A stretch of DNA of 64,000 bases from Perna viridis (Eukaryota), in assembly GCA_037379345.1 (NCBI GenBank), contig CM074516.1:18476001-18540000 (forward strand). Reading direction: 5' to 3'. Below the pieces are notes generated by a model. The model searched no databases, was not told where the DNA came from, and saw nothing but the letters and a program-made list of their open reading frames with translations. Below, one piece after another: positions 21,566 to 52,222 of the stretch (within the stretch, counting starts at the first letter, position 1; each line of letters opens with the position of its first letter). The translations under genes were made by a program, and so were the position numbers.

Positions 21566-22259
21566 GTTAAATTTTGATTGTAAACTTTAATCTTAAGGCA
21601 TCACTCGGTGTCTTTTTTCGTAATAAAGTTTATCATGTTCATCACGTGAGTCTTTGATCTCATAACTCCCAATCAAAAGCAAGGTAATTGGTTATTGGGG
21701 TAGAAAAGACAATCCTTTCAATGAAAACATCAGATTGTGTAAACGTCATAATAAAAAAAATATGATGATTCTTCAATACAAATTCTATACTGAATAAAAA
21801 CTCTGTGATTCTGAAGTAGCGAACTAAATAAAATCGGACTTCAGTATTAAATGCTTCCAACCAATTATAGTCTAGAAAAAAAGAATTGCGAAAAAGACTT
21901 ACAGGTCCCCTTCCTACCGCTGCAATGATACACTTTAATAATAATTACGTTATGTTTATATGTTTTCGAAATTGTATCAGAAAATATCATTGCAGTCATT
22001 CTTATGAGATCAAATAAATAGTTCTTACTGAATGATCTCGATGTGTAATAATTCCAATTGTAAACGACTGGCATACTATTATTTTGAGAAAAAATGATAA
22101 CCCTTTGCAAAGTATTTAGGCAGATATTAAACTGGCATGGCATTTTTTCCTCTAATTTTCGACAAACATGCACCGGTATATTATCTCTAGCAACGGCAAT
22201 AAAAGTTCGAACCATAGGATATAAACAATGCCCAGGCTTATTATCAATTTTTTTTTCAG

Positions 22260-28766: not shown

Positions 28767-28830
28767 TTGAATACAAACGTTCCAATGATTTGTAAGAATT
28801 GTGTCCCTTACCCTAGGTCTACCTCCTTAA
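28767..28830 (-). mobile_element. Solo end of the same Kolobok-type MITE
   Basis: Same 24-bp TIR and TTAA plus the adjoining internal sequence (aaatcattggaacgtttgtattca on the minus strand); abuts the Naiad at ~28760. Confidence 0.8.
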
Positions 28831-28996
28831 ACCATGTTAACGTCGTTTTCTTGAAATGCAGTTTGCTTTTAGCTATTAAAATGTTTTCTTTTTAGAACAT
28901 AATAAGTTGAATGTGTGAGACAGAAGACTGAATATGCATCGCTGTTTGTTTTCAAGTTGTTTGAATTATCCTTTACAAAATTGAAGTGAAGATAAT

Positions 28997-29057
28997 ATGC
29001 TGACCTCTGTATTCCTGGTTGTCATATCTTACTTTATATTTTGCCTTCAATATACAG
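28997..29057 (+). CDS. Exon 1 of PR/SET gene: signal-peptide-like leader MLTSVFLVVISYFIFCLQYT
   Basis: ATG, 20 mostly hydrophobic codons, then a phase-1 donor AG|GTAGTA; joins in frame to the knuckle exon at 29461. Confidence 0.6.
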
Positions 29058-31475
29058 GTAGTATCATACAATTATTATATTTCCATAGACATTTAAAGGG
29101 GGCTTCATTTTTACCACACATTTTAATCACAGTCAAACTTGTTTCATTTTTTATGTTTTTGGGGAACTTGTATGTAGAATATATTTTAGAAAAAATGGAT
29201 GATGAATATCATCTTTCCAATTAATCATTAAGTCAAACGTTATTTTGACTTTCAAAACAGAATCTGATATTTCGCGAAACGAGTGTAGTTAAACAGACAT
29301 AATCCTTATTTAACCTGCATATATATTTTATAGGACAAGAAGAAAACCATTATTGTCTGTTGGTAAGAGAGATTTGTTTGTTTTTGTTTTGTTAGTGATC
29401 ACAGATTTTATTATTATTATTATCATTATTATTACTACTATTTAATTTTATTGATTGTAGCATGCTATGATTGTGAACATCCTAATCTGCCAATGGAGCA
29501 CGGACTTTATGTCATTAAGAACGAAAAGGTTTGTCTATATTTCAACGATATTCGATTTTTTTTTAAAGATTTAGCCTTAAAGAATGTCAGAAAGTCTCGG
29601 AAAAGTTAAATTCGTAACACAGTTTTTTGTTTTGTTTTATTTGTTTTGTTTTTTTTTTTAATTTTAATGAGAATGGATAATTTTGAGATTTGGTGAATAT
29701 GCTAAAGATACAACAAACCCAACAAGGTGTAAAAAACAGGTCAAGACCCCAAGACCTAAGGGTCTTTAATGAACGAGAAAACCCTCACACCACAATGGAA
29801 GTTTCAGTTTCCTCCGAAGCAACATTATTAACAGATACAGCAAAATAGTTGCTCTTATGAACTACAGCAATATAACGGAAAACAAAAAAAAAACAAAGCA
29901 AGACAAGACACACAAAGGCAAAAAAATCCTGACGTGCTAAAAATGCGGTAAATGTGCTTTGGTGTGATTATAACTCTCCCCCTATTTTAAATCTGGCCAC
30001 TGTGAAAAAAAACTATTACATGTACGCAATTAAACACACGTAAAAACATTTCAAAAGGTCACAAAATGCTATCTTTAACAATTTGACAATATCGTAAAAT
30101 ATACCTCACGAATGAGTCTATTCAACGGTTTAGTAAAGCCGACATATTTTAATATCAGTACTTACTTTGTTCAAAGAAAGTTTTTCAGGATATATATTTT
30201 TATTATGAATATTAAAATTGACGTTTTTAAGACACAAACTATCGCCTAAATATCAAATATCTAGATCTGAAGGTGTTTTTTAACTTTTCTACCAAATGTT
30301 GTTTGGAAGGAACTTCATTCATTCTAGCCATTAATTGTGATCCGTAACAATACAATAAGTAGTGCAGAATTGGTTCCATGGGAATTCCAATGACTTGATG
30401 GTAGACGAAAATGGAGTCTTACAAGAATTTTGAGTGCTGTAAGCATATCAAAAGAATTCCAGTTATCGTAGTTGTTTTTTAAGTTTTTCATAACTAAAAA
30501 TCTGTTAATTAAGGGCATATTTGATATATGCGATTTGTTTTATTTGTTTATTTATTTATTTATTATTTTATTGTATTTTTTATTATTATTATTGTAGAAA
30601 TGTGGTGTATAGAGTAGAAAAATAATACTTTGAACAGATTCGAAAGATCCCACATGGGCATTAAATTTATTAAGCATTTCAAGCGAATTTTTAATATTCC
30701 AAAAAAAGTTAATTCCACTATTTTCATTTCATACACATTGTCCCAAAATCATTTGATCGTTTAACGTTAAAGTGCGCACTAGTATGTAAAATATAAGGTC
30801 TGGTTGAAGCGCAATGGCTTGAAAAGGAAATAAATCTGTATCTTAGGGTGTTTTGTGAAGTCTGGAAAACCAGTGCATTGTAGAAACTTCTAGGTTGAGT
30901 TTGTAAAGAGGTAGCGGTAGCTTGTGTGTGTTTACAATTTTAGGTTTTTGAAATTTAGTCAGTTGGAATGTAGATGAATTTGTGATATCTTTCTGTTGAA
31001 TTTAAATATATATATTTACGTCAAATAACAATATTATTTGCAGCTTTATCAGTGTGAACAAACGCAAATTCCTTGCCAAATTCGTTCAACTTGTATTTTA
31101 TTCGGGAGATTCGGTTTTTTATGTTTTTCTAAGGAGTAAAGTGTTCTGTAAAATGTTTTATTCGGATAACAACTATTTTCATAACTGTTTTGAATAAAGA
31201 ATACAAGCTCTATCCATCTATACAATGCGAATGGAGTGAGTTCTGAATGGTGTTTACGACATTTGTTCGAATTGGTAGTGGCTGGAGGACAATACTAATG
31301 TCCGTTTTGACGACTTTTTTTCTATTATTCAGTCGTTCACGACATTCAGATTGCCTTAATAACATGAGAACTGGGACAATACTAATATTTTGAGTAAATG
31401 CAATTTCAGGATATTGGTTATTTTTCTTAATGTTCACATCTTTGCCTAACTTCCTATAATTAACGACATATTAAC

Positions 31476-31520
<45 letters not shown>

Positions 31521-34500
31521 GGTTGTGCTAATATAGCAAATATACGGAAATTCAGTGTTACCAAAATAAATAAGGATGGTTTCCATTAATGTCGTGTCAT
31601 TAACCACTTCTTATGTTCCCATTACTTTTACATGTTGAAAAAGCAATTTTCAAAGTTTCACTGTGAATTTTCAGGATAAATGATATCTTAATGTTGCATA
31701 ATATTGTTAAGCTTGGAAAACGAGTCTTTGAAAATCATTATGCTAATGCTAATGATGGTTGGATTTTTTTCACCACATTGACTTGAATTGATAATACTGA
31801 AAATCTACATTCTTACCCTTTCTGCTAAATAGCAGCATGTGTAAACAATATTTATACAATTTTGAATTGTAAATTACAACTATAATTTTGAAGAACAAAT
31901 TCTAAGCTTTATTTTGACTACTTTTTTTCAATCATAATACACACAGAATATGCTCTTACTATCACCGATTTTTTTTTACTATTTTTTGGTACTATAAAGG
32001 GTGGATAGCTATTTGACCAGGAGTGGTAAGTGAGACCAGCACGCTCATTCAAAATACCATAAAATACCGGTAAAATCAATTCCTTAATTAATATATATTT
32101 AATGTTTATCAAATGTGATTTACTGGATAATCAATTTTCGGGAAAAGTATGGAATAACAGTAAGCAATAATAATTTGAACAGTTTCATAATTTGAAGTGC
32201 TGAACAAAATTTTATCACATTCCTCCACAATAGTGTGTAATCTAGTGACTAATATGGAACTAGTAAATGTTAATCAGGTTTGAAACCGTCGTATTGTTAT
32301 TTCGAGGTTTTTGTTTAAAACGATTTAGTCTGCGTCCATGAAACCATATTTTACGCATTAGTTGAGGAACTATATCACAAATGTTGACCGAATCTGTTCT
32401 TAAGGTGTTACCTATTCCCATAGACTGAAAGGGTAGACTGTTTGAAACTCCCGTATCCATTCCACGTCAATCAATCTACGGGAAAGGCGGAACTTTCAAT
32501 ACGATTCCCCTGACTGTTTATTAAGTATGTCGCATTCGCAAGTTTTATTTGATGCTTGTTTTGTATAAAAATAGAAGCTGTGCATATATGATGATATATA
32601 GATTTGATTTTTATTGCTACTAGTTTCAATTTTATTTTTTTCTCTTAAACTGATTTTTCATATTTTCAATTTGTTAGTTATACTTCTTTCATATAATTAG
32701 CCAGAGAATCGAAACGCTGACTACGCCATTGGAACAACGCCTCCTGGATTTTCAGTGAGAAAGTCGTCGATTCCAGGGGCTGGGCTTGGGGTGTTTGCTG
32801 AAACCACAATTCCTGCTAATACAAGACTTGGTCCATTCGAAGGTATTATCTACGCAGAAGCCACAAATGAGGATCAGAGTTATGTTTGGATTGTAGGTAC
32901 ACATATTTTTTTTTGTATTTCTGGAAGAAACATAAAACCATCGTCCTATTATGCTGTTTTAAATAACGGCAAAGCCCATTTTTTATTATAAAAGAAAGGA
33001 CAAAAGACGAGAGAAATTGTAAATTTTGATAAATATATGTGCATACAGAAATGATTAAGAGTAGTGAACAAATTGTAATTTTTCATTGCAATACGTAGAA
33101 ATAGAGGGACGTGGTAAGTTGTAGAGGACGATGTTCTCATTATGATAATTAATAATAATTTTACTCCAAAATTTAATTTTATTTTAAGATTTAAGAAGCA
33201 CTGAAAGTCCGATATCAGTGTAACTGAAATTTACCCTTCAACACAAAGTAAGGATCCATACCAGTTTCGTGTAAAAAAATAAACAAAAATATTTCAAATG
33301 CATAGTAGCACCTGCCTTATATTGAACTACTCTTCTTAATTATAGATATGATAGGCAGTAAGTAAAGCAACATCATATATAAGGGTAGTACTGATTTAAA
33401 GTAAATTAACCTTAATATCTTCTTTTCCTTTTTTTGCCATAGATTTACTACTCTGATAATTCGGATGACGAATACCGTTATATTGATGGGAAATATAAAA
33501 GTCACTCTAGTTGGACACGATACGTCAACATGGCAAACACCATTGATCAGGAAAATCTTTACGCTCATCAGTATAACTTTCAAATGTACTATGTGACGTA
33601 TGAATGTATAAAACCCGGAATTGAGTTACTAATATGGTATGGAGAAGATTACGGTGCTGCATACGGTCTGAAAAGAACGGAAGAGGACTATCTTGGACGC
33701 TTTAACGCTTCCACAGAAATATTTTACCTAAACACAGTACAATCAGGTATAGCGATAAAAAATCAAGAGGGCATTGTCAAATGATAATGCTGCGGGCAAT
33801 ACCTCACAGTAATTAATACCCATTTTAAATTCTTCAATGCAATAAACACTAAATTTTCTTAAAAATACTGCATCATGGTAAATTGAATACCCCTTTGAAT
33901 GTGCAGTTGTCTTTGATAATGACACTGCCCTCACCTGTGTCTCAATAATTTATCAACGTATCAGGCGGTAATACTCTACTCTAAGTGTTCAATTTATGAT
34001 GCCGATCTCTACAAATGGTGTTATCCGAAAATCTTCAGCATTTGAAAAACGAAAAAAAAAAGATGTCCTGTTGATAAATTTGTACGATTTCTTACAATTT
34101 TTGGAAGAGTTTTAAACAATTCCTGGCCTATGTTACAATGCGTGTGATAGATAATTCAATGTATATGCATGTAAGATGATATACAATGACAATACGAGTG
34201 AAATTGTAAGAACGATTTACAATACTAGAACAACTTAATGTGATGAAATGATGAATAGTTCAGTTTATTGAGCAACAATGTCCGTCCATTACGTATATAT
34301 TAACTAGGTATATTATTCCAACCCAACAACTACGGAACTTCTTTAAATTGTATCCCAACACGCAAAAGCATTCATGTTCATTACAAGTAGCAGTTATCAT
34401 CAATTGATGGTGTTGATAGAAAGACAGTATTGAAAAAATGTTGATTCAAGAGTAGAGATCTTAACCTTAAACCATTCTGAAGAAGCAGAAAATTTGCCGA

Positions 34501-37460
34501 ATTGTTGTTTTTATGACATGTTTTAACTAGAATTGAAATAATTTATTACGGTTTTTAGCTTAAAATTTAAATGAATAAAGAGAAAATTAGACTAAATCGA
34601 CCGCTTTGACACGTGTACTTATGTGGGAGAATGCATTGTATTTCAAGATTTAGAGACATCAATCGTGAATTTGACTGTGGTACATTTAGCTTATTGGCGA
34701 CGTGTAGGCGGATTGATGACGAAAATCTTCAAGTAAAATACGATAACCTCCATTCTAATGCAACCATTAAATATGTCAATGGAAATAATATATGATTTTC
34801 TAAATGAATAAGCGCGTGCGTTTAAATTTGAGACATTGGCGTCCTAAATATTTCGGTGTTATCCATTGAATTCCTTGTTACAACGGATGTAGCATTAGAA
34901 TTCATATTGTTTATGTTAAGAAAAAAATCTTGTTATGTGTATATTTTTTAAGACTTTATTTTTGTTTTTGTGTTTTACCTCTACTTAAAACATATGAATT
35001 GTTTTCAATTGTTGGTTAGAATATCAGATAACCATTACTTTTGATCGGTTTACGCTGCACCGTCTTAAGATACGATCATCGCATGACAAAACTGTGTTCA
35101 GACGTATTCAAACCTTATCTGCAAGGATTGACGAAATCGCATTTAATTATCAGCGAAATATTGTTTAAATTGACAGTAATTGAATAAGTAAAATAAATAC
35201 AGACTTTTTACTTGTTACATAGCTTAACTATAGACAGTTTTAAACATACTTTACACATTACTTTTTTCAATTTTATCTAATAGAAAAGGTTGTCCAATAC
35301 TCGTCAACGTGCTACAAGTTTAACCAGCAGTGTCCATTCAAAAAGCCACCAAATTATAATGGGAACTTCACTAAAACATGTCTCTACGAAGCATACCATG
35401 ATATTTGTAAATATGCAGCATGTGATATCAACCCATGTACTGGTGTAGATGACTGTGGTTATTGCAAAGGTAAATGGATTTCTGTTTCTACTGGAATTTA
35501 ATCGGCTTGTGTTCACTCTCAGGAAAGCAGATGATTTAAAGTGAACAGAACGTCTTTATCCATTTCACTAAGCATTTTTTAAATTGCTTAGAATCTCTAG
35601 GTAGCCCTGTTAATATATAAATATTTTAGGAAACTAAAACTGCTATAACATTCAATGCGCAGTAATAACTTATCTACCTCAGATGCTAAGAAATATTTCA
35701 GGATTTCCCCATTTTATCATTTGGAATCATAATAAATTACATACACGTGTTAAAATTCTCATTAAACCACCAATTTATTATTGTAAATAATATAATGATT
35801 ATCTTAAAAGCTCTACTACAAATGTATAATAAATAACACCAGAAACGCTACACAAATTTGTGTACTAAGTATCCCTAGTCCATGGGCTGGGAGGGTTCCC
35901 TGTGTATCCCACAAATCAACTTCATTATTATTTTCAGGCACCTTTTTCCCCATCAGTTTGTCGACAAAGAATATTCTCGGATTATTTTCCAGTACGAGCT
36001 TATCTGTATATCAACGAGGCCATAAAGTCAATATGTTTCTGACTCTACTGTTCGAGCTCTAAGTCATCCTTGGACATCTCACATTAATATTGAATACATA
36101 ATAGTATAAGCATGTAGCAAAATTTCTCAGTGCTCTAGTGATATCACGAATGTTGCAGTAAGACTCGAGGTTATTGGTTTAAGTAAAATATGTACCCCTA
36201 CCCAACAAAACAAATCCCTTGAATTGACATATTTTTCAATGTCAAAACCCTTGAGTATTTTAGGCGTCAATAATAAAATGGCCAATTTGATATTTTCTGT
36301 TTAGTACCCTCACAATTTCTGCCTCTGGAGTTCTTTTGTTGCCTTCAGGCGATTTCATATTAAGAATTTATTCACAAATGGCTAAAATTGGGCTTTTCAA
36401 ATAGTCCACTAAGTCCTGTAAATTCATCTATACAAGTAACTGCACGACAGATACGTCTCATTCGATGGATAATTCCATTTTCTACATTACGAAGCTTCCT
36501 ATATAATATTCAAAATATCACCCTACCAATCAAAAAACAAGTCCCCATAGAAACAATATCTTCATTCAGAACATATAAAAACTGTAAAAACCTACATCTT
36601 TGGCATTAATAATCAAATTATTGTGGCATTCTACATATCAGATCAATAACAGCTCTTAGTTTTTCGTTTTGAAGTAACAATTATTATGTAATTGTAAAAA
36701 GGGGCGTTTTCAGATTTTCATCTATTTCGCCTTTTTTCGCATTCTTTTAATACTGTAATTTAATTATAGCCCATAATGAAACAATGATAAAACAGAAATT
36801 CATTGATTTATTTCTTAAATTTCCCATCCCAAATGATATTTTGTCCCAGAAAAATTTCATAATAATAAGGTTGGTTATTAGATTACTTCATAAAAATATA
36901 AATCTAAAGCTTTCAGAACCTGATTAGTGTGTGCCATTTTTTTTTCAGCAACACATTTCCAGTAAATTGAAAATAGTATTTGTAATATTTTCTTAAACAC
37001 CTTTATGAAATAAACTATGGTTAGGCAGTTGCAGCCTACCTTGTGGTGTGAGGGTTCCTTCCTTTATTGAAGACCCATAGGTGGCCTTTAGCTGACATTT
37101 TTTATCCCAGTTGGGTATTTGTCTCTTTGACACTTTCCACTCTTGTTATTTTTGGTGAGACTTGGTATGTTTGAACCTTCCATTGGTAGTACTGTACACA
37201 TAGCCCCCTTACATATAAGCTCATTTGTATAATGTTTTTGTTAATATATATCGCCTTCTATCTATTAACACTTAATAAGTGTTTTTTTGTCATATTTTTT
37301 ATTAATTCTTACAGAATACTGCTTCTACATGGGAAAGTACTTTACACCACATCACGAATTTCAACATGTTGATAATGTTAATGTATGTTTTTGTACTGAC
37401 AGTTTGGAAATTAAGTGTTCTGAAAACTGGAGTACGTATAAAGACATGTGTTTTTATTGA
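28997..37460 (+). CDS. Multi-exon gene: signal peptide + degenerate PR zinc knuckle + PRDM7/9-like PR/SET domain + two Cys-rich modules (~318 aa), no C2H2 fingers
   Basis: Hand-assembled join 28997-29057, 29461-29528, 32701-32892, 33443-33746, 35284-35469, 37315-37460. All introns are GT-AG with compatible phases (1,0,0,1,1); total 957 nt with no internal stop. Translation: MLTSVFLVVISYFIFCLQYTA-CYDCEHPNLPMEHGLYVIKNEK-PENRNADYAIGTTPPGFSVRKSSIPGAGLGVF...LGPFEG...YVWI-IYY...YIDG...SWTRYVNMA...ENL...ELLIWYGEDYG...-8-Cys module-5-Cys module-stop. AATAAA at 37892. Confidence 0.72.
29461..29528 (+). CDS. Exon: degenerate PR-domain zinc knuckle (CYDCEHPNLPMEHGLYVIKNEK)
   Basis: TTGTAG acceptor and AAG|GTTTGT donor. 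The CxxC...HG...IK pattern matches the knuckle preceding PR domains (PRDM9 CEMC...CAAHG...VKD), with the third Cys missing. Confidence 0.7.
31478..31519. repeat. Poly-T tract in a PR/SET gene intron
   Basis: About 42 consecutive T. Confidence 0.95.
32701..32892 (+). CDS. PR/SET domain exon, N-terminal half (PRDM7/9-like)
   Basis: PPGFSVRKSSIPGAGLGVF...LGPFEG...SYVWI aligns by eye to PRDM9 PPGLRIGPSGIPQAGLGVW...FGPYEG...GYSWL. Phase-0 donor GTAGGT falls right after the YxWx motif. Confidence 0.92.
33443..33746 (+). CDS. PR/SET domain exon, C-terminal half
   Basis: YIDGKYKSHSSWTRYVNMANTIDQENLYAHQYNFQMYYVTYECIKPGIELLIWYGEDYG matches PR motifs YVDG..NWMRYVNCA..QNL..IFY..ELLVWYG. Polypyrimidine/TAG acceptor; phase-1 donor at 33747. 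Confidence 0.92.
35284..35469 (+). CDS. Symmetric phase 1-1 exon encoding an 8-cysteine module (loosely WAP/four-disulfide-like)
   Basis: Open 186-nt exon EKVVQYSSTCYKFNQQCPFKKPPNYNGNFTKTCLYEAYHDICKYAACDINPCTGVDDCGYCK, with TAG acceptor and AAG|GTAAAT donor. Confidence 0.7.
37315..37460 (+). CDS. Terminal exon encoding a VWC/pacifastin-like Cys module
   Basis: TTACAG acceptor; EYCFYMGKYFTPHHEFQHVDNVNVCFCTDSLEIKCSENWSTYKDMCFY* follows the C-x-Y-x-G...F...D-x-x-N-x-C-x-C...C...C pattern. Confidence 0.68.
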
Positions 37461-38649
37461 GTCCACTGGACAGACACAACACAGCTCAGATGGAGTAATA
37501 TTCATATGAATTAATTTTGTATATAGTTCATTTAGAGACATAATTAGATAAATTAAACAAAAGGATTGGTGGATCCAGGGGTGGGCGTCTGGTAAAAGGG
37601 CCTTCTTTTTGGTGGAAAATTTTCTTCGTTTTGTGCAAAATTTGGTACAAATTAAGCAAATCATAGTTTGAGCTAGTTTTAATTTTCTGGATGATGGATG
37701 GGAAGCCAACACCCCCTCCTTTAATCAAAAATGTCTGGATCTGAACGTGGCGGTTAGTTATGTTCAATATATAACAACATTAGTTTATAGAGTCAAATGA
37801 TAATTTCGGATCAGACTTTTGTTGGAGGCAAGTAAAACATAGTCATATACTAGTGTTCAAAAGTACAATGTATCATGATGAATTATGAGTAAATAAACTG
37901 TTTAATTCAGCAATGTGTATTTATTGTTGTTGTAATATATTACTGAATATTGTTGTTGCAGGAAAATGTCTATGAAACAAAAACGTATTTAGTGCTATTC
38001 TTTTTTAAAGAAAACAATTTTCAGGGTGGAGAGATACTACAATGCTATTTTTATTTTTTTTTTTTCGAAACTGCAAAAATTATAAACCCAAGAATATATT
38101 CAGTTGACAGAATCTGTGAAAATTAACGCGTGTATAGTACATACTAATCTCTTCATTATTACTTTGAAGTAATAACTGATAGCATATCATTTGTTATTCG
38201 TATCTACATAAGGGCAGGTGAGGTTGTTATTTCTACAGAACATTTGTTGTATGCTTTAACAAATGTTGAATTTCAAACTTACTGTCAAAATAATAACTAG
38301 AAAGAAAGTTTATTGATTGGTTGTGCTTTTATATCAGAAATAGCGGAACTTCAAACAATTTAATACGAGAACGATCAGCCGATCGAGCAGCCCTGTTTTG
38401 CTTTATTCAGGACAAAAATTCATAAGCTAATCTGTGAACACAAATCAACTATTTGTTTCACTTTCAAGTTGCACGTCATTAAAATTGCTACTGCGTTAAA
38501 GGGACAGTAGAGTAAGGCTTTATGGTAATTGTACAGGGAACCATATTTCACCAAGTTTGCATTTCTGATTTAATCTTCTGGAAAGGTTTGAATATTTTAG
38601 CAAATATCAACAAAAAATTCCGAATCAAAATCTTGGCAAATTGTAGGGC

Positions 38650-42959: not shown

Positions 42960-45900
42960 TAACCGATGAAATCAATAACTCGACAAATATTTATTACAAA
43001 ATCATCTGCTGGAGACTTGTTATTTTTAGCATTTTTGATAGCTCTAATAACTTCCTCCTTAGTAGTAGCTTTGTTAAGTTCAGCATTAACAATAATATCG
43101 CCAGGATGAGTTACATTTGGTATATCTTCATAATTCTTATTTACCTCCTTAAAATAATCAAATGAAGTATCGATTTCCATATCATTACTGTGGACTGGTC
43201 TATCCCTATTCAGGACTTTCCAGTATTCACGAGGATTATTAGTTTTCAAAGATTTCTTCATTTTCTTCAGTTCAAACTTATAATTCTTAATACTATTGTT
43301 TAAAGTTTTCTCATAGATCTTTTCACTAGCCTGAAGGCCTGATTTTAAAATATTAGAACCATAATGTTTGTACAATCTTTGTGCTTTTCGAAAATCTTTT
43401 CTCTTTGTATAACAATCCTTGTCAAATCAAACTTTGGTTTGAATTTTATCAGGATTATTTTTCACGACATTTCTATTCCGCCGAACACCAAATGTTTGTT
43501 TTGCAGAATAAAGCAAAACATCTGTTATTTTAACCACAATATCATTTAAATAATCCTGATCAACACTCCGTTAAGATCAATATTATTTTTTATAGTCGTT
43601 TAATCTATTTTGGTCCCAGTGACCTATTTTCTCAGAATAATGAGTTTGCATTTCTTCATAACTCTCGTTCAAGTCATGATATTTATAAATATCAACACTT
43701 AAATGTAAAGGAGAATGTATATCTGAATAGAGACTGCTAAAATCAATTACCTTAAAATTATTTAGCCTGTGCATCATATTTGCAGTACATAACGTATAAT
43801 CAACAACAGCTCGTTGCTTTACCATTTCTATCCCCAGCTATTCGCCCATTTAATATAAACACATTGTTGTTTTTACAAAATGATAAAAATTTCCTTCCAT
43901 AGTTATTTATAGTTTTGTCTACAGAAATTCTGTCTCTTGGGATATTTAAACTGTCTATTTCCTGTATATAAGGAAACTGTTCACAAAAATAAAATTCATA
44001 ATCAAAATTATTATTTTCTGTCTCTCTAGAAATGTAATAGTCTGGCAAATTACCAGTTCTATTAATGAAATCGCCAAAAGAATAATGTTTGAAAATCCTT
44101 TTGCAACATTTGAAATTCTAATTCAATCTCATTAAATGCATCATTTGATGGATATCGAGAATTTTCAGGTGGAATGTAAACTAATCCACACACAACATCA
44201 TTGACAAGATTTTTTATTCAGCTTGAACCAATAAATGTATGGGCAGTTTTTCTCGATCGGAACTACATGTTTTTCAAACCCCTTTTACAACCAACAATGA
44301 TACCACCAGATTTATGATTCGAATAAGTTTTTCTATTTTTGTAGAAAAATGCAAAATTATTTAAATTTATAACATTCAAGTTATCTAATTTAGATTCTGT
44401 TAAACAAATAATATCAATTTCGTTTAGAAGATCTCTAAACTCAGGGTATAAAATTCTATTCTTCTTTGTTATTATTGACAAGGTTTTCATAATGAAAGTC
44501 AGTTACGGTAGAGTTAGTCTCGTCATACCTCTGTCTGTTAACCGTTGATACTTCTTGACCGGATTATGACTATCTCTGGGTTCCTCTGCGGGGTTTACCA
44601 CGTCCTCGAGTTGGTTGAAATTCAAACTTAGGTCGGGCTCCATGTTCACGGGTAGGAAGTCTCTCATTTGTTTCCATATCGGCTTCGCTCGTAACTGGTG
44701 GAATGAATTCACAACCATCAATGAATAATTTATCTATCTTGAAATGAGCTTTTTTTCCGCTGATTTTTAGCTTCCTTGTAGAAAAGCCATAGAACTTTCC
44801 GACGGTCAATAATTTCCTTTGGGTACTGCTCATTTACACCGCACCGGGTACCTTGTAGATTGGCAGCGGCACTTCGAACTGTTTCACAATCTTTAAAGCA
44901 TTTAAATCTACATACTATAGGTCTGGTTGCAAACAATGTATGGCCGTTTTGAGGATCTTTGACACCGTACTCTTTACCAAAACGATGAGCTCTATAAAAT
45001 TCGATAGGGCTTTCCATTTACATTTGGTTTGTCATAAAATCATTGATAACTACTTCAGTGTCTTCTGTTTCGAAAGGAACAGGGATTCCTGTTAAGACTA
45101 AATTTCCCCGCATTGACCTTGTTTGTAAGTAAAGGTGTCTTTCAAAAAGGTTATCTAAATCGGTTCTAAGTTTATCCACATCTTCTGATACGTCGTCGTA
45201 TTCGGCCTGTAGGGTGGCGATCGAAGATGTCATAGTTTTACAATCAGTTTGGTTTTGTTCATAGTTTTCGTTCATGAATTCCATACTTTTTTCTATTTCA
45301 TTCACACGGTTTGTAATTTTGTCGACATATTTGGCCAGGCTACTCATAGTGCTTTCGAATTTGTTCAGTTTTTCGCTCAGTTTGTCTAAAATGTTTAGTT
45401 TTGTGGACATTTGTTCGATCTTACTGATGAGAGAATCCATTTTTGCATTTGAGTCAGGTCCGTGACTCATGGTGGACTGTAACATAGGTTGCATAGGGAT
45501 CGACATTGGGCTTGTTATTGCTCCATTATAATCAGAAGATCTGACCATATGTATATTCGGCTGAGAAGTATATTGGAAAGGAATCTGCTGCATAACTGGG
45601 GTCTGACAAAAACTGTTCATACCTGTTGTCTATTGTGATGCCACTTGATTCAACGAGTCATTGTACAGAACATTTCGTGACTGAGTAGTGTTTATCTTAC
45701 TTGGATTATTATTGTCAGCATTTTCATTGTGATCTTTAGAAGTTTTCCTTTTTTTTGCAGCATTTTGTTTCTTCTTCGCACTCATAAATGCAGTATTAGT
45801 CACTTTTCAGTAGTATTTTGGCACTCACAAATGTTCATTTTCACAAAGAGATCTTCATGGAGAAAAAAATCAACACGTCCATTTTGTTTTCACACATACA
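42960..45900 (-). mobile_element. LINE (RTE-X/CR1-group-like): ORF1 + APE endonuclease, RT missing (3'-truncated), pseudogenised
   Basis: ORF1 from ATG 45785: coiled coil, then RSMRGNLVLTGI, RAHRFG, RPIVCRF, EQYPKEI..RR, DKLFIDG. ORF2 pieces: IICLTESK, SGGIIV, NNYGRKFLSFCK..ILNGR..GD, VVDY, SDIHSP, ending at KNNKSPADD. Many stops and frameshifts. Confidence 0.88.
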
Positions 45901-49084: not shown

Positions 49085-52000
49085 GCAACAAGAGACGACA
49101 CATATGTAACCTACAAGGAGTTAGATGAAATAAAGTCCAGTATACACCAGATCAGTACTGAGAAAGACGAGCTAATTAGAAAGCAGTCAAATGAACTGAA
49201 GGAGTTGAAACAGATGGTCGTTGATCATGGTCAGTTTGACTAAAATATCTTTTGTACAGCTAAGTGATAGGTATCATTGTTATGCTGTTGAAAATTGTGT
49301 CCGCAGTACTTGTGTCAAGGACTTAAACACTAAAAATTGGGATGGAAACTAAAACAATCTACAACAAATATTAATAAAACAATACTATGGAAAACCTCAA
49401 CATTAATTTACACAGTTGTAAATATTTCACATTACACCCCACTTCCTTATTTAGTGTTTTGGTAGTTAAAATTTCAAAACACGTCATATAATGTAACAAT
49501 GTGGTTGTTTTCTAATAAGTTGTTTTTATCTGTAAAGCAGAAATTGAAAATGGCATGTTAAGAAGGAAACTTCATGAAAATGTTCAAGTTGTAACAAAGA
49601 GGTTCTTGGAATTGAATAATACTGTATCCCAACTACAGAGTGGAATGGAACTCATGTCTAAGGCAAAAAGCGTTGTTAAACGAAACACAGGTTTGTTGAC
49701 GTATTCAAAATGTTAAGTAGCAGTTATTGTAAAAATGTCGCAAATTTTGTAATATGTGATGCATGTTCATCTCAAAAAGGCTACACATTCTTATTTTCGG
49801 TTATTACGTTGTTTTAATGGTCTTTATAATGAAGTTTATGACTATTTTTTTCATTCTGTCTGCCCGTAAGAGATAATTCATATTTAAATTTCAAAAGTGT
49901 CTATTTCATTTCAGTGTCATACATAGAGTAAGCACTCTCTATTTTGAATTATACAGTACATACATATATATACTGTAAAACTTGAGATCATGGGTTCTAT
50001 GAAATGAAACATATAAATTTATGTTAACTTTAACATTTTAAACGAAATATTGAACATTAAAATATGTAAGCTTTCTAACCATTTATCACATTTTGTATGA
50101 TTTTTAGGTGGAAAGCTACGCACGCTTTATCACTTTAAGTCATACTTTGTCTAAAATCACACCAGGTACAAACATGTTCCATGGGCTACGTTGTTAAGTT
50201 CTAATGTGAAGTTCAAATAGAAAATATGATACAAAATTGGTTTTGTACGAGTAGATTTCATATTAAAAAGCATGTAAACTTGAATAAAAATAAGTGTTTT
50301 GTGAATTTAAATGCAGCTTAATAGGGTTGTGGGTAATACGTAGAAATCGGCGAGTAGTTATCGGTTTTATGTGATAGTTCATATTGCCAGTGCTATAGTT
50401 TTGTATGTCATGTCTTGTTTTCCTTATTTTTATATCGAATCTATTTTATTTGATTCTCTACATTCTGTATGTATATTGTTCTGTTGTGTGTTTTTGCATT
50501 AATGTTTTTTGGATCTTGATGTGTCTAAACTATACCACTGCTGACGTTTTGGTATTTCTCTTTGCTGATATCAACACACAATTTTACACAAATGCAACTT
50601 ATATTTTAGAGATAAGTTATGCACTGTTAAAGGTATACAGCTATTTTAGTGTTTGTTTAAATGCTTGATTTTATTTAATTATTTAACTATTTGTAAGCAC
50701 ACAAGTTCAGCAAATGTAAATATTACTTTAAGGCAGTACAACCATCGCTATCCACACTTTTAGTCTTAATATAATTGCAAGTAGAAAAAATAATTGACTG
50801 CAACATGACTACAAAAATCTTGAGAAATGTTTTCATCAGAAAAAAAACCAAATCAGTGTATATGTATATTAACTTCAAATAAAACAACAGTTTTCTCAAT
50901 GAGGATATACACTCCAGTTCTTAAATCTAAACAAAACGTAGTAGTATATAATGTTTCTAAATATCGATACTTGCATTGCTGAAAGAAAATGAGATTTGCT
51001 TAAATTGCCGCTTTATTTTTTTACTTGTTAATATCAGAGAAAATATTTAAGCTTCAATACAAATAGACAATATAAGCTTAACAATGACATGACTAAGATT
51101 CCATTAAATCGGGATGATTCACAAACATAATGTAGACATAACAAATTTAAGTTTACTATAAAACCTGAAGATTAAAAAACACAAGACGGCTAAGACAACT
51201 AGCACAAATATAGTCATTGTAATGATAAGTCCGTAAAAAATATCTTAAAATTTCATCTGGTTCGCTAGATGAGTAAACATGTCCTGCTCTGTCAGGAATA
51301 ATCATGCATATTGCAAACTGGCCAATTATATCAAAGTCATTTTTCGCTCTAAATATCACATTAATATACAAATCACATTCATCACTGAAACGGTATTAGC
51401 TATAAAATGTATACTATATATCCTCAAGATTTTAGTAAACTTCGAAAATACTAATGTTCGTGGGGTTCCAATTTCGTAATTGTCGTGAGTAGGTCAAACC
51501 ACGATACTTAGTTTAGTTCCCTACGAAAATGAATTTTTTATTGATGAGTATACTGAAAACCAAAACCCCAAGAATCAACGAACATGTGCTTCTTCCCTAA
51601 TCTACGAAAATTGGTGCCCACGAGTTTAAGTATTTTCACAGTATTGCCACAAAGATAGGGGATGTTGTTGAGTATTGGACTTGATTGGAAAAAACAAATA
51701 TAACTTTAGGTTAAGATTAAAGATGCGTAATACACTCTAGCAACGATGATGCAAAGTGTGATTCATGGGTCTAAAATAATATACAAATTTATTATTAAAA
51801 TCCAAGTCATTTTTTTTTCAGACTCACCTGTTGCATTTTACGCACTTGTTAAAGAACCTATTTTGAATCTCGGCGATAATCAAGAAATACATTTCCTAAT
51901 TGTTGCGTCAGACACACATAATGCATTCGACGGACCAACAAGTGTATTCACGTGTCCAGAAAGTGGTTACTACTTCTTCATACTATCAATTATGACATAT

Positions 52001-52222
52001 CCTGGAACCCACATCGAAGCCATTATCCTCCATGACGGAGACAAGTTTGCATATGTTCATTCACAGGGAGGATCGTCTTCATATGACCAGGGTACAACTG
52101 GTGCAGTAGAATATGTAAATGCTGGAGATAAGATTTGGGTTACCGTACACGACGATGTCCATATTGGATCGGGGAAAATGATTTTCAGCCATTATTCAAC
52201 ATTTTCTGGTTTCAAAATTTAA
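49085..52222 (+). CDS. C1q-domain-containing protein (coiled coil + gC1q); 5' end uncertain
   Basis: Exons 49085-49229 (heptad-rich YKELDEIKSSIHQISTEKDELIRKQSNELKELKQMV), 49538/49541-49690 (coiled coil ending VVKRNT) and 51822-52222 (SPVAFYA...HNAFDGPTSVFTCPESGYYFF...VNAGDKIWV...YSTFSGFKI*). Phase-1 joins stay open; ATTAAA at 52281. The start is either the ATG at 49022 or an unidentified upstream exon. Confidence 0.85.
51440..51643. mobile_element. Tc1/mariner-like MITE remnant
   Basis: Right end cgaaaattggtgcccacgag...ttttcacagTA is inverted to ttcgtggggttccaatttcgt at the left; left terminus degraded. Confidence 0.5.

Follow-up and report, generated by a model that had tools for sequence, protein, structure and literature searches.

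A mytilid family of PRDM9-type PR/SET proteins with a hydrophobic leader and cysteine-rich modules, probably routed into the secretory pathway

PR/SET domains are known as modules of nuclear chromatin and transcription proteins, and PRDM9, which together with PRDM7 stands for the meiotic histone H3K4/K36 methyltransferases, sets the hotspots of meiotic recombination. In the mussel Perna viridis, we found a PRDM9-type PR/SET domain in a very different context, namely behind a hydrophobic leader and in front of two cysteine-rich modules. The gene in question lies in a stretch of 64,000 nucleotides that was analysed as a whole and is termed the window in the following (GenBank assembly GCA_037379345.1, contig CM074516.1, positions 18,476,001 to 18,540,000 of the forward strand; contig 6 in our numbering). 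It belongs to a mytilid family that is split from canonical PRDM9, and we consider it reasonably likely that this constrained gene encodes a protein that enters the endoplasmic reticulum (ER) and serves as S-adenosylmethionine (SAM)-dependent lysine methyltransferase or as lysine-peptide binder.

The window family shares with PRDM9 and PRDM7 the PRDM9-type PR/SET domain, a remnant of the knuckle, the tyrosines Y341 and Y357 (human PRDM9 numbering) and the SAM-binding motifs. The differences concern everything around this core. KRAB and SSXRD are missing, and in their place stands a hydrophobic leader of 20 amino acids that is followed by the knuckle; the knuckle lacks zinc ligands, two cysteine-rich modules follow the SET domain, and there is no C2H2 array, the frame ending at position 37460 after the cysteine-rich modules. 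Moreover, the mytilid family is a clade of its own, and mussels keep a canonical PRDM9 as well. Mytilus proteins that are annotated in RefSeq as “histone-lysine N-methyltransferase PRDM7-like” or “PRDM9-like” (P0167, P0172 and P0173) belong to the same family and have the same architecture and exon structure at 45-60% identity, but they come from other species, and their names are automatic only.

How could such a protein have arisen, and what may it do? We favour the explanation that a mytilid family split from canonical PRDM9, lost the KRAB/SSXRD head and the zinc-finger array, and gained a signal-peptide-like leader exon of phase 1 as well as two cysteine-rich exons. Most likely, the leader would serve as a signal peptide that is cleaved off, or as a signal anchor of N-in topology, and direct the protein into the ER, so that the PR/SET domain as well as the disulfide-bonded modules would come to lie on the luminal or outer side. 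The PR/SET domain would act on proteins of the secretory pathway, namely as a functional SAM-dependent lysine methyltransferase or, as a minimum, as a lysine-peptide binder, and the cysteine-rich modules may tether or target it. Such a function is suggested because paralogues whose synonymous sites are saturated still have the motifs for SAM binding and catalysis that are known from PRDM9. A luminal or secreted SAM-dependent lysine methyltransferase is the most likely single mechanism, and a non-catalytic lysine-peptide binder is its main rival. Entry into the secretory pathway as such is probable, and the hydrophobicity of the leader, the conserved cysteines, a conserved sequon, the exon phases and a weak fold similarity are what points to this rerouting. 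Disulfide bonding, catalysis and substrates we infer.

As rebuilt from the sequence, the window gene consists of six exons on the plus strand (28997-37460, Table 1) that splice to 957 nucleotides, corresponding to 318 amino acids and a stop codon. Every acceptor is AG and every donor GT, and the introns have phase 1 after exon 1, phase 0 after exons 2 and 3, and again phase 1 after exons 4 and 5, exon 5 thus being a symmetric 1-1 exon. A preliminary description of this DNA had proposed exactly such a series of six GT-AG exons with matching phases and one 318-residue frame, and its counts could be reproduced: exon 5 carries eight cysteines, and the protein has 17 cysteines, one of which lies in the leader (C16), which leaves 16 beyond it, and the sequons NAS (195), NFT (236) and NWS (308). 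The hydrophobic leader, given there as 21 residues long, is also present and has 20 residues by our count. The PR/SET domain is complete, again as proposed, because exons 3 and 4 together span positions 2-121 of the 123 positions of Pfam PF21549 (PRDM2_PR). With a family cut-off of 27 bits, exon 3 reaches 35.8 bits (E 7e-9, profile positions 2-48) and exon 4 reaches 69.9 bits (E 2e-19, profile positions 53-121), and Pfam gave no family match for exons 1, 2, 5 and 6. The claimed lack of DNA-binding fingers held as well, since the C2H2 pattern C-x2-4-C-x10-13-H-x3-5-H occurs in none of the six frames of the 64-kb window, which thus has no finger exons downstream of the gene either. The PRDM9-type knuckle, as found in P0174, a canonical PRDM9 of mussels, is C-x2-C-x7-C-x2-H and has four zinc ligands; the window knuckle, said to lack one of them, reads C-x2-C-x8-H and indeed retains three (C, C and H). 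In most paralogues, another residue stands in place of the His, and three paralogues have lost the first Cys; zinc binding by the knuckle is probably lost.

Table 1. Features of the window gene (positions in the window) and paralogous loci in the same genome (positions on the contigs)
Feature	Location	Strand	Description
Exon 1	28997..29057	+	Start codon and 20-residue hydrophobic, uncharged leader; phase 1 end at G/GTAGTA
Exon 2	29461..29528	+	Degenerate PRDM9-type knuckle (CYDC...H); phase 1 in, phase 0 out; present in 10/10 loci
Exon 3	32701..32892	+	N-terminal half of PR/SET; GAGLGVF; GPFEG, i.e. Y276F; Pfam PF21549 E 7e-9
Exon 4	33443..33746	+	C-terminal half of PR/SET; SWTRYVN, MYYVT (Y341), ELLIWYG (Y357); post-SET stretch; NAS sequon; phase 1 end
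Exon 5	35284..35469	+	8-Cys module; phase 1-1; no Pfam family; collinear in 10/10 loci
Exon 6	37315..37460	+	5-Cys terminal module and stop codon; small beta fold in the P0168 model
ATTAAA	37552..37557	+	Possible polyadenylation signal, read from sequence; 92 nucleotides 3' of the stop codon
L018	contig 6: 18599989-18606099		Paralogue locus
L019	contig 6: 18689000-18698999		Paralogue locus; compact, 4.8 kb
L021	contig 6: 18707500-18717499		Paralogue locus; compact, 3.9 kb
L020	contig 12: 6970500-6980499		Paralogue locus
L022-L026	contig 11		Five paralogue loci

An exon-by-exon search of the 723-Mb genome revealed nine more loci with homologues of exons 2-6 in the same order and orientation; contig 11 has five of them, contig 6 three and contig 12 one. 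At all ten loci, canonical splice sites are found at homologous positions with equal phases, and the frame from exon 2 to the stop codon is open over 290-303 amino acids. As order, phases and open frames are kept ten times, the cysteine-rich exons share one gene with the PR/SET exons. Pairwise ratios of nonsynonymous to synonymous substitution rates (dN/dS), calculated by the Nei-Gojobori method with our own script, are 0.09-0.29 in the part that comprises knuckle and SET domain and in the cysteine-rich part alike, the near-identical pair of window copy and L018 being the only exception, and between the group on contig 6 and that on contig 11, synonymous sites have reached saturation. The dN/dS test that had been suggested for this gene thus gave low ratios in both parts, and by these ratios both are under purifying selection. 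As judged from this conservation, the window model is more than a chance assembly: it is a real, intact and constrained gene, one of at least ten paralogues. Within the genome, L019/L021 on contig 6 and L024/L025 on contig 11 are convergent pairs, and L023 and L026 are same-strand neighbours about 17 kb apart.

Outside this genome, homologues were sought with HMMER, for which exon 4 was compared with 1.84 billion representatives, and by two subsequent homology searches; all queries to databases were single exons or one of the homologues P0168, P0003 and P0167, and the joined window protein was spliced only for counts, alignments and dN/dS. The same architecture, for which the preliminary description had suggested a search in other bivalves, was found in Mytilus gene models and in intronless mytilid contigs. 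P0168 from another mytilid has 316 amino acids and is encoded on a contig of 1088 nucleotides that starts in an Illumina adapter and continues with a 5' untranslated region of 37 nucleotides, and its leader, knuckle, PR/SET domain and both cysteine-rich modules are contained in one uninterrupted open reading frame (ORF). The same layout is found in P0171, which also has 316 amino acids and stems from a cDNA-like mytilid contig of 1146 nucleotides. The genes have five introns in the window genome and span 7.8 kb in Mytilus trossulus, and the intronless contigs of P0168 and P0171 are therefore regarded as transcripts. With the single ORF of P0168, the proposed union of the cysteine-rich exons and the PR/SET exons in one transcript is shown for a homologue. 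Hydrophobic N-termini are also present in the M. trossulus RefSeq models P0172 and P0173. The contig of P0003 (L028) is spliced at introns 2-5 and starts in the 3' end of intron 1 (L028:1-130), of which a polypyrimidine tract and CAG are seen. The “MLFISV” start of P0003 was rejected as a leader, as it is an artefact of ORF calling on a contig that begins inside intron 1, and the contig of P0001 (L030) was rejected as a transcript, as it is collinear genomic DNA (33247-34063). In M. trossulus, a second PR/SET gene with a 240-residue product that is cut by the end of the locus lies 4 kb downstream of the P0172 gene (L029:21792-27792); on this sequence, the family is tandemly arranged in M. trossulus too.

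As to the relationship of the PR/SET domain, PRDM9 is the best solved relative of exon 4 (E 4e-19, with the next PRDM protein at 4e-9), and PRDM9 and PRDM16 are among the PDB matches of exon 3. A quick tree of 71 PR/SET domains, calculated by maximum likelihood over 141 columns, places 20 mytilid sequences (the ten loci together with the Mytilus and the transcript-derived proteins) in one clade with an SH-aLRT support of 99, and this clade is separate from the canonical PRDM9-like proteins of Mytilus, oyster and scallop. The canonical bivalve proteins have a long polar N-terminus of the KRAB/SSXRD type and, in scallop, fingers; in mussels, P0174, P0048, P0056 and P0177 are canonical PRDM9 proteins with a long polar N-terminal region. 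Going by the tree and these N-termini, mussels hold both a canonical PRDM9 gene and the derived family with leader and cysteine-rich modules, and the earlier claim of a PRDM9-derived domain in a new context is backed by PDB matches and tree alike.

The structural comparison is based on an AlphaFold2 model of the homologue P0168, not of the window protein, that was calculated with an alignment of 75 rows (A2); this deeper alignment replaced an earlier one that consisted of fragments only and gave the SET part a predicted local distance difference test score (pLDDT) of 54. The final model has a mean pLDDT of 88 and a predicted TM score (pTM) of 0.79, and only residues 1-20, i.e. the leader, are below 50. 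Foldseek superimposed the SET part onto PRDM9 in complex with H3K4me2 and S-adenosylhomocysteine (4c1q_A) with an E value of 4e-15, a root-mean-square deviation of 1.6 Å over 146 columns, 40% identity and a TMt of 0.78.

With respect to the active site, Y276, Y341 and Y357 of human PRDM9 serve as markers of catalytic competence in the literature (PMC5519329), and a 2026 preprint regards Y276 as “probably dispensable” and Y357 as best conserved. In the mytilid family, Y357 is present in all 20 members, Y341 in 18 (the other two have Y341H), and Y276 in 16, with Y276F in the window copy, its duplicate L018, P0171 and P0003. The motifs GxG, (S/N)W-x-RY(V/I)N and EL(L/M)(V/I)WYG are found in nearly all 20 members, with single-residue variants in a few, and the window copy has all of GxG, RYVN and ELLxWYG. 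As these motifs were retained across saturated divergence, they argue for a functional SAM pocket.

What suggests that such a domain enters the ER? The window leader has 20 residues without any charge and a 12-residue hydropathy of 2.85, as compared to -0.5 for the N-termini of canonical PRDM9. It directly precedes the CxxC of exon 2, and an acidic flank follows. The positive-inside rule is established knowledge of membrane topology, and since positive charges are absent from the leader and the flank behind it is acidic, the protein body is predicted to be luminal irrespective of whether the leader is cleaved or not; in the window copy, no clear -3/-1 cleavage site is visible. Four paralogues (L018-L021) share this leader exon of 61 nucleotides together with its start and its donor, and between the window and L019 or L020 it is 82-84% identical, as compared to 57-66% for the adjoining 61 nucleotides on each side. 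The M. trossulus gene of P0172 has its leader exon, with a phase 1 end (ATC G/GTAAGG), just before the CxxC exon, which is the arrangement of the window gene. The expectation that homologues have the leader thus held for P0168, P0171, P0172 and P0173, all with a hydrophobic N-terminus, but not for P0167.

The cysteine-rich modules would fit such a compartment. Ten cysteines of the tail are invariant in all 16 full-length members, and two more are found in 15 and 14 members, both being absent in L023; seven of the eight exon-5 cysteines are among those that are invariant in 16/16. The even number of cysteines, which had been pointed out for the mature chain, is found beyond the leader in 12 of the 16 members, but other members have odd numbers. 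Some cysteines were lost together (C22 and C225 in L024 and L025, C295 and C305 in L023), and although exceptions exist, this co-loss is suggestive of pairing. A sequon (N-x-S/T) behind the SET domain is kept in 10/16 members. Conserved cysteines and sequon may be seen as indirect signatures of a disulfide-bonded, glycosylated protein.

In the P0168 model, the exon 6 equivalent (residues 267-315) is a small cysteine-rich beta fold with pLDDT values of 79-97, for which VWC, fibronectin type I (FnI), TIL-E and pacifastin modules are the nearest solved folds, whereas the cysteine spacing of the window family fits none of these and no Pfam or sequence match to them was obtained. With VIA-align, the nearest folds are FCGBP (Z 4.3), FnI (Z 3.5-4.0), VWC (Z 2.8-2.9) and pacifastin (Z 2.3), and TIL-E parts of FCGBP, mucin and VWF are among them; the Foldseek E values are 0.14 or higher. 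Every one of the top structural neighbours of this terminal module is an extracellular disulfide module, and none is a zinc finger. The label “VWC/pacifastin-like” that had been given to this module goes back to weak structural matches (Z 2.3-4.3) and has no counterpart in a sequence-family match. The exon-5 module had no structural match, Pfam has no family for exons 5 and 6 or for the tails of P0168, P0167 and P0003, and a homology search limited to the tail recovered family members only. In the ESM Atlas, the best score for the cysteine-rich modules was 0.76, which is below the useful range, and in the own genome the cysteine-rich exons were found at the ten loci only.

Several points weigh against a luminal or secreted lysine methyltransferase. 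It is uncertain whether SAM is available beyond the cytosol, the full set Y276/Y341/Y357 is represented by F, Y and Y in the window copy, and the fold scores of the cysteine-rich modules lie below the significance guides of the tools themselves. The leader is not equally clear everywhere: the five contig-11 loci have competing candidates for the leader exon, the leaders of L019-L021 carry charged residues in their middle, and the M. edulis RefSeq model P0167 has a polar N-terminus without leader and without knuckle. Furthermore, SET proteins often carry cysteine-rich post-SET regions that bind zinc. As for the cofactor, mollusc glycans are O-methylated, and the luminal SAM supply that an enzyme would require is plausible.

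What alternatives exist? The PR/SET domain could have become a peptide- or lysine-binding module of a secreted non-enzyme, for example in an expanded family of recognition or matrix proteins, with the cysteine-rich modules being used for binding or oligomerisation. Little SAM is to be expected outside cells, and the expansion of the family in tandem and dispersed copies, the vicinity of a C1q gene, and the oyster proteins in which a PR/SET domain is embedded in a C-type lectin domain fit to recognition; substitutions at catalytic positions also occur (Y276F in 4/20, Y341H in 2/20). However, even though the synonymous divergence is saturated, all 20 members have Y357 and nearly all have the motifs GxG, RYVN and ELLVWYG, which speaks against a mere binding module, and the low whole-gene dN/dS of 0.1-0.25 is unlike the pattern expected of fast-evolving recognition proteins. 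We thus regard a secreted non-enzyme as unlikely, albeit as the alternative to be taken most seriously.

More improbable is an intracellular PR/SET protein in which the cysteine tail binds zinc, be it as a post-SET-like or as a novel finger region, and in which the N-terminus is a membrane tether or remains unused. Zinc-binding cysteine-rich regions before or behind the SET domain are common in SET enzymes, exon 5 has a CxxCxxxC run, the pTM of 0.79 suggests that the tail is packed on the SET domain, and the RefSeq model of P0167 does without a leader. Yet the tail has no conserved His, its structural neighbours are extracellular disulfide modules and not fingers, and the cysteine changes mostly keep the count even, with a sequon being conserved in addition. 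Moreover, Mytilus models and cDNA-like contigs have a leader that is conserved in paralogues, the leader exon has a phase 1 end, and exon 5 is symmetric (1-1), all of which speaks against this alternative.

A last alternative concerns the window copy and not the family. The nearest paralogue L018, 92 kb downstream, is 93.6% identical to window positions 28775-37984 over 7.8 kb, and as this identity extends over the introns, the two are a recent segmental duplication. It is very improbable that the window copy has fallen silent or is decaying as a duplicate of this neighbour, with only other members being expressed. The dN/dS of 0.52 for this pair, which is based on few changes, would speak for it, but frame, all splice sites, conserved cysteines and motifs are intact and the coding dS of 0.035 is lower than the whole-locus divergence of 6.4% including introns. 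Sequencing reads would cross-map between the window copy and L018 unless a stringent likeness is set.

Leader-bearing PR/SET proteins seem to occur outside the mytilids as well, and there are other systems that share single aspects with the proposed ER-entering family. The oyster proteins P0211 (Magallana gigas) and P0200/P0205 (Saccostrea), which combine a C-type lectin domain (CTLD) with PR/SET, and P0165 of Gigantopelta aegis have a hydrophobic leader, a PRDM9-type PR/SET domain, parts of extracellular type and no fingers, but they fall outside the mytilid clade in the PR/SET tree and have other partner modules. In P0211, P0200 and P0205, the leader is followed by about the first 40 CTLD positions, after which come the PR/SET domain in full length and a C-terminal end that resembles a CTLD. 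In the oysters, the PR/SET domain thus seems to be inserted into a lectin domain, which may also be an artefact of the gene models. The gene LOC121386784 of the vent snail G. aegis (P0165/P0015) encodes a protein without fingers that starts with a signal-peptide-like leader and has two PR/SET domains with a short cysteine motif behind each of them. Together, these proteins suggest that leader-bearing PR/SET domains are a wider phenomenon in molluscs. Exported SET-fold methyltransferases are also known from Legionella (LegAS4/RomA), and the SET part has LegAS4 as one of its structural matches (E ~7e-7), but these are bacterial proteins that a type IV system delivers into host cells to methylate histones, without a PR-type SET domain and without disulfide modules, and the resemblance to bacterial SET effectors is one in idea only.

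As to the surroundings of the gene, the preliminary description had placed it among immune lectin genes. A C1q-domain exon was indeed found at window positions 51746-52222 on the plus strand (Pfam PF00386, E 2e-16), while an F-type lectin was not found among the 20 longest other ORFs of the window. On the minus strand, there is an ORF for a 200-residue coiled coil (45018-45620) and an ORF of 116 amino acids (21865-22215) with a sub-threshold match to Pneumo_M2 (24.2 bits at a cut-off of 27), which is probably due to chance in AT-rich sequence.

In the full-text literature on PRDM7/9 in mussels and bivalves, on secreted SET domains and on lysine methyltransferases of the secretory pathway, we found no description of a leader-bearing cysteine-rich PR/SET family of molluscs, nor of a SET enzyme in the secretory pathway of animals, and a survey of bivalve C-type lectins and a paper on the green-mussel byssus do not mention the family. 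This is consistent with the earlier statement that no animal family of such architecture had been described, although the proteins are already in RefSeq as automatic “PRDM7/9-like” entries. The domain described here is known as such, but its architecture is new, and its compartment probably is as well.

Behind the automatic “PRDM7/9-like” names of mollusc genomes there are proteins unable to act like PRDM9, which matters for surveys of the presence and function of PRDM9 across animals. It is possible, though doubtful at present, that mussels, and perhaps bivalves more widely, have expanded a set of PRDM9-derived lysine methyltransferases that act in the secretory pathway or outside the cell on secreted matrix, mucus, byssal, immune or microbial surface proteins. 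If the proposed mechanism is true, lysine methylation or a recognition of the methyl-lysine type would have been recruited to the secretory or extracellular space of animals, and these proteins would be the first animal SET-domain enzymes of an extracellular or luminal compartment. The family thereby raises the question of enzymatic protein lysine methylation, and of its substrates, in the animal secretory pathway.

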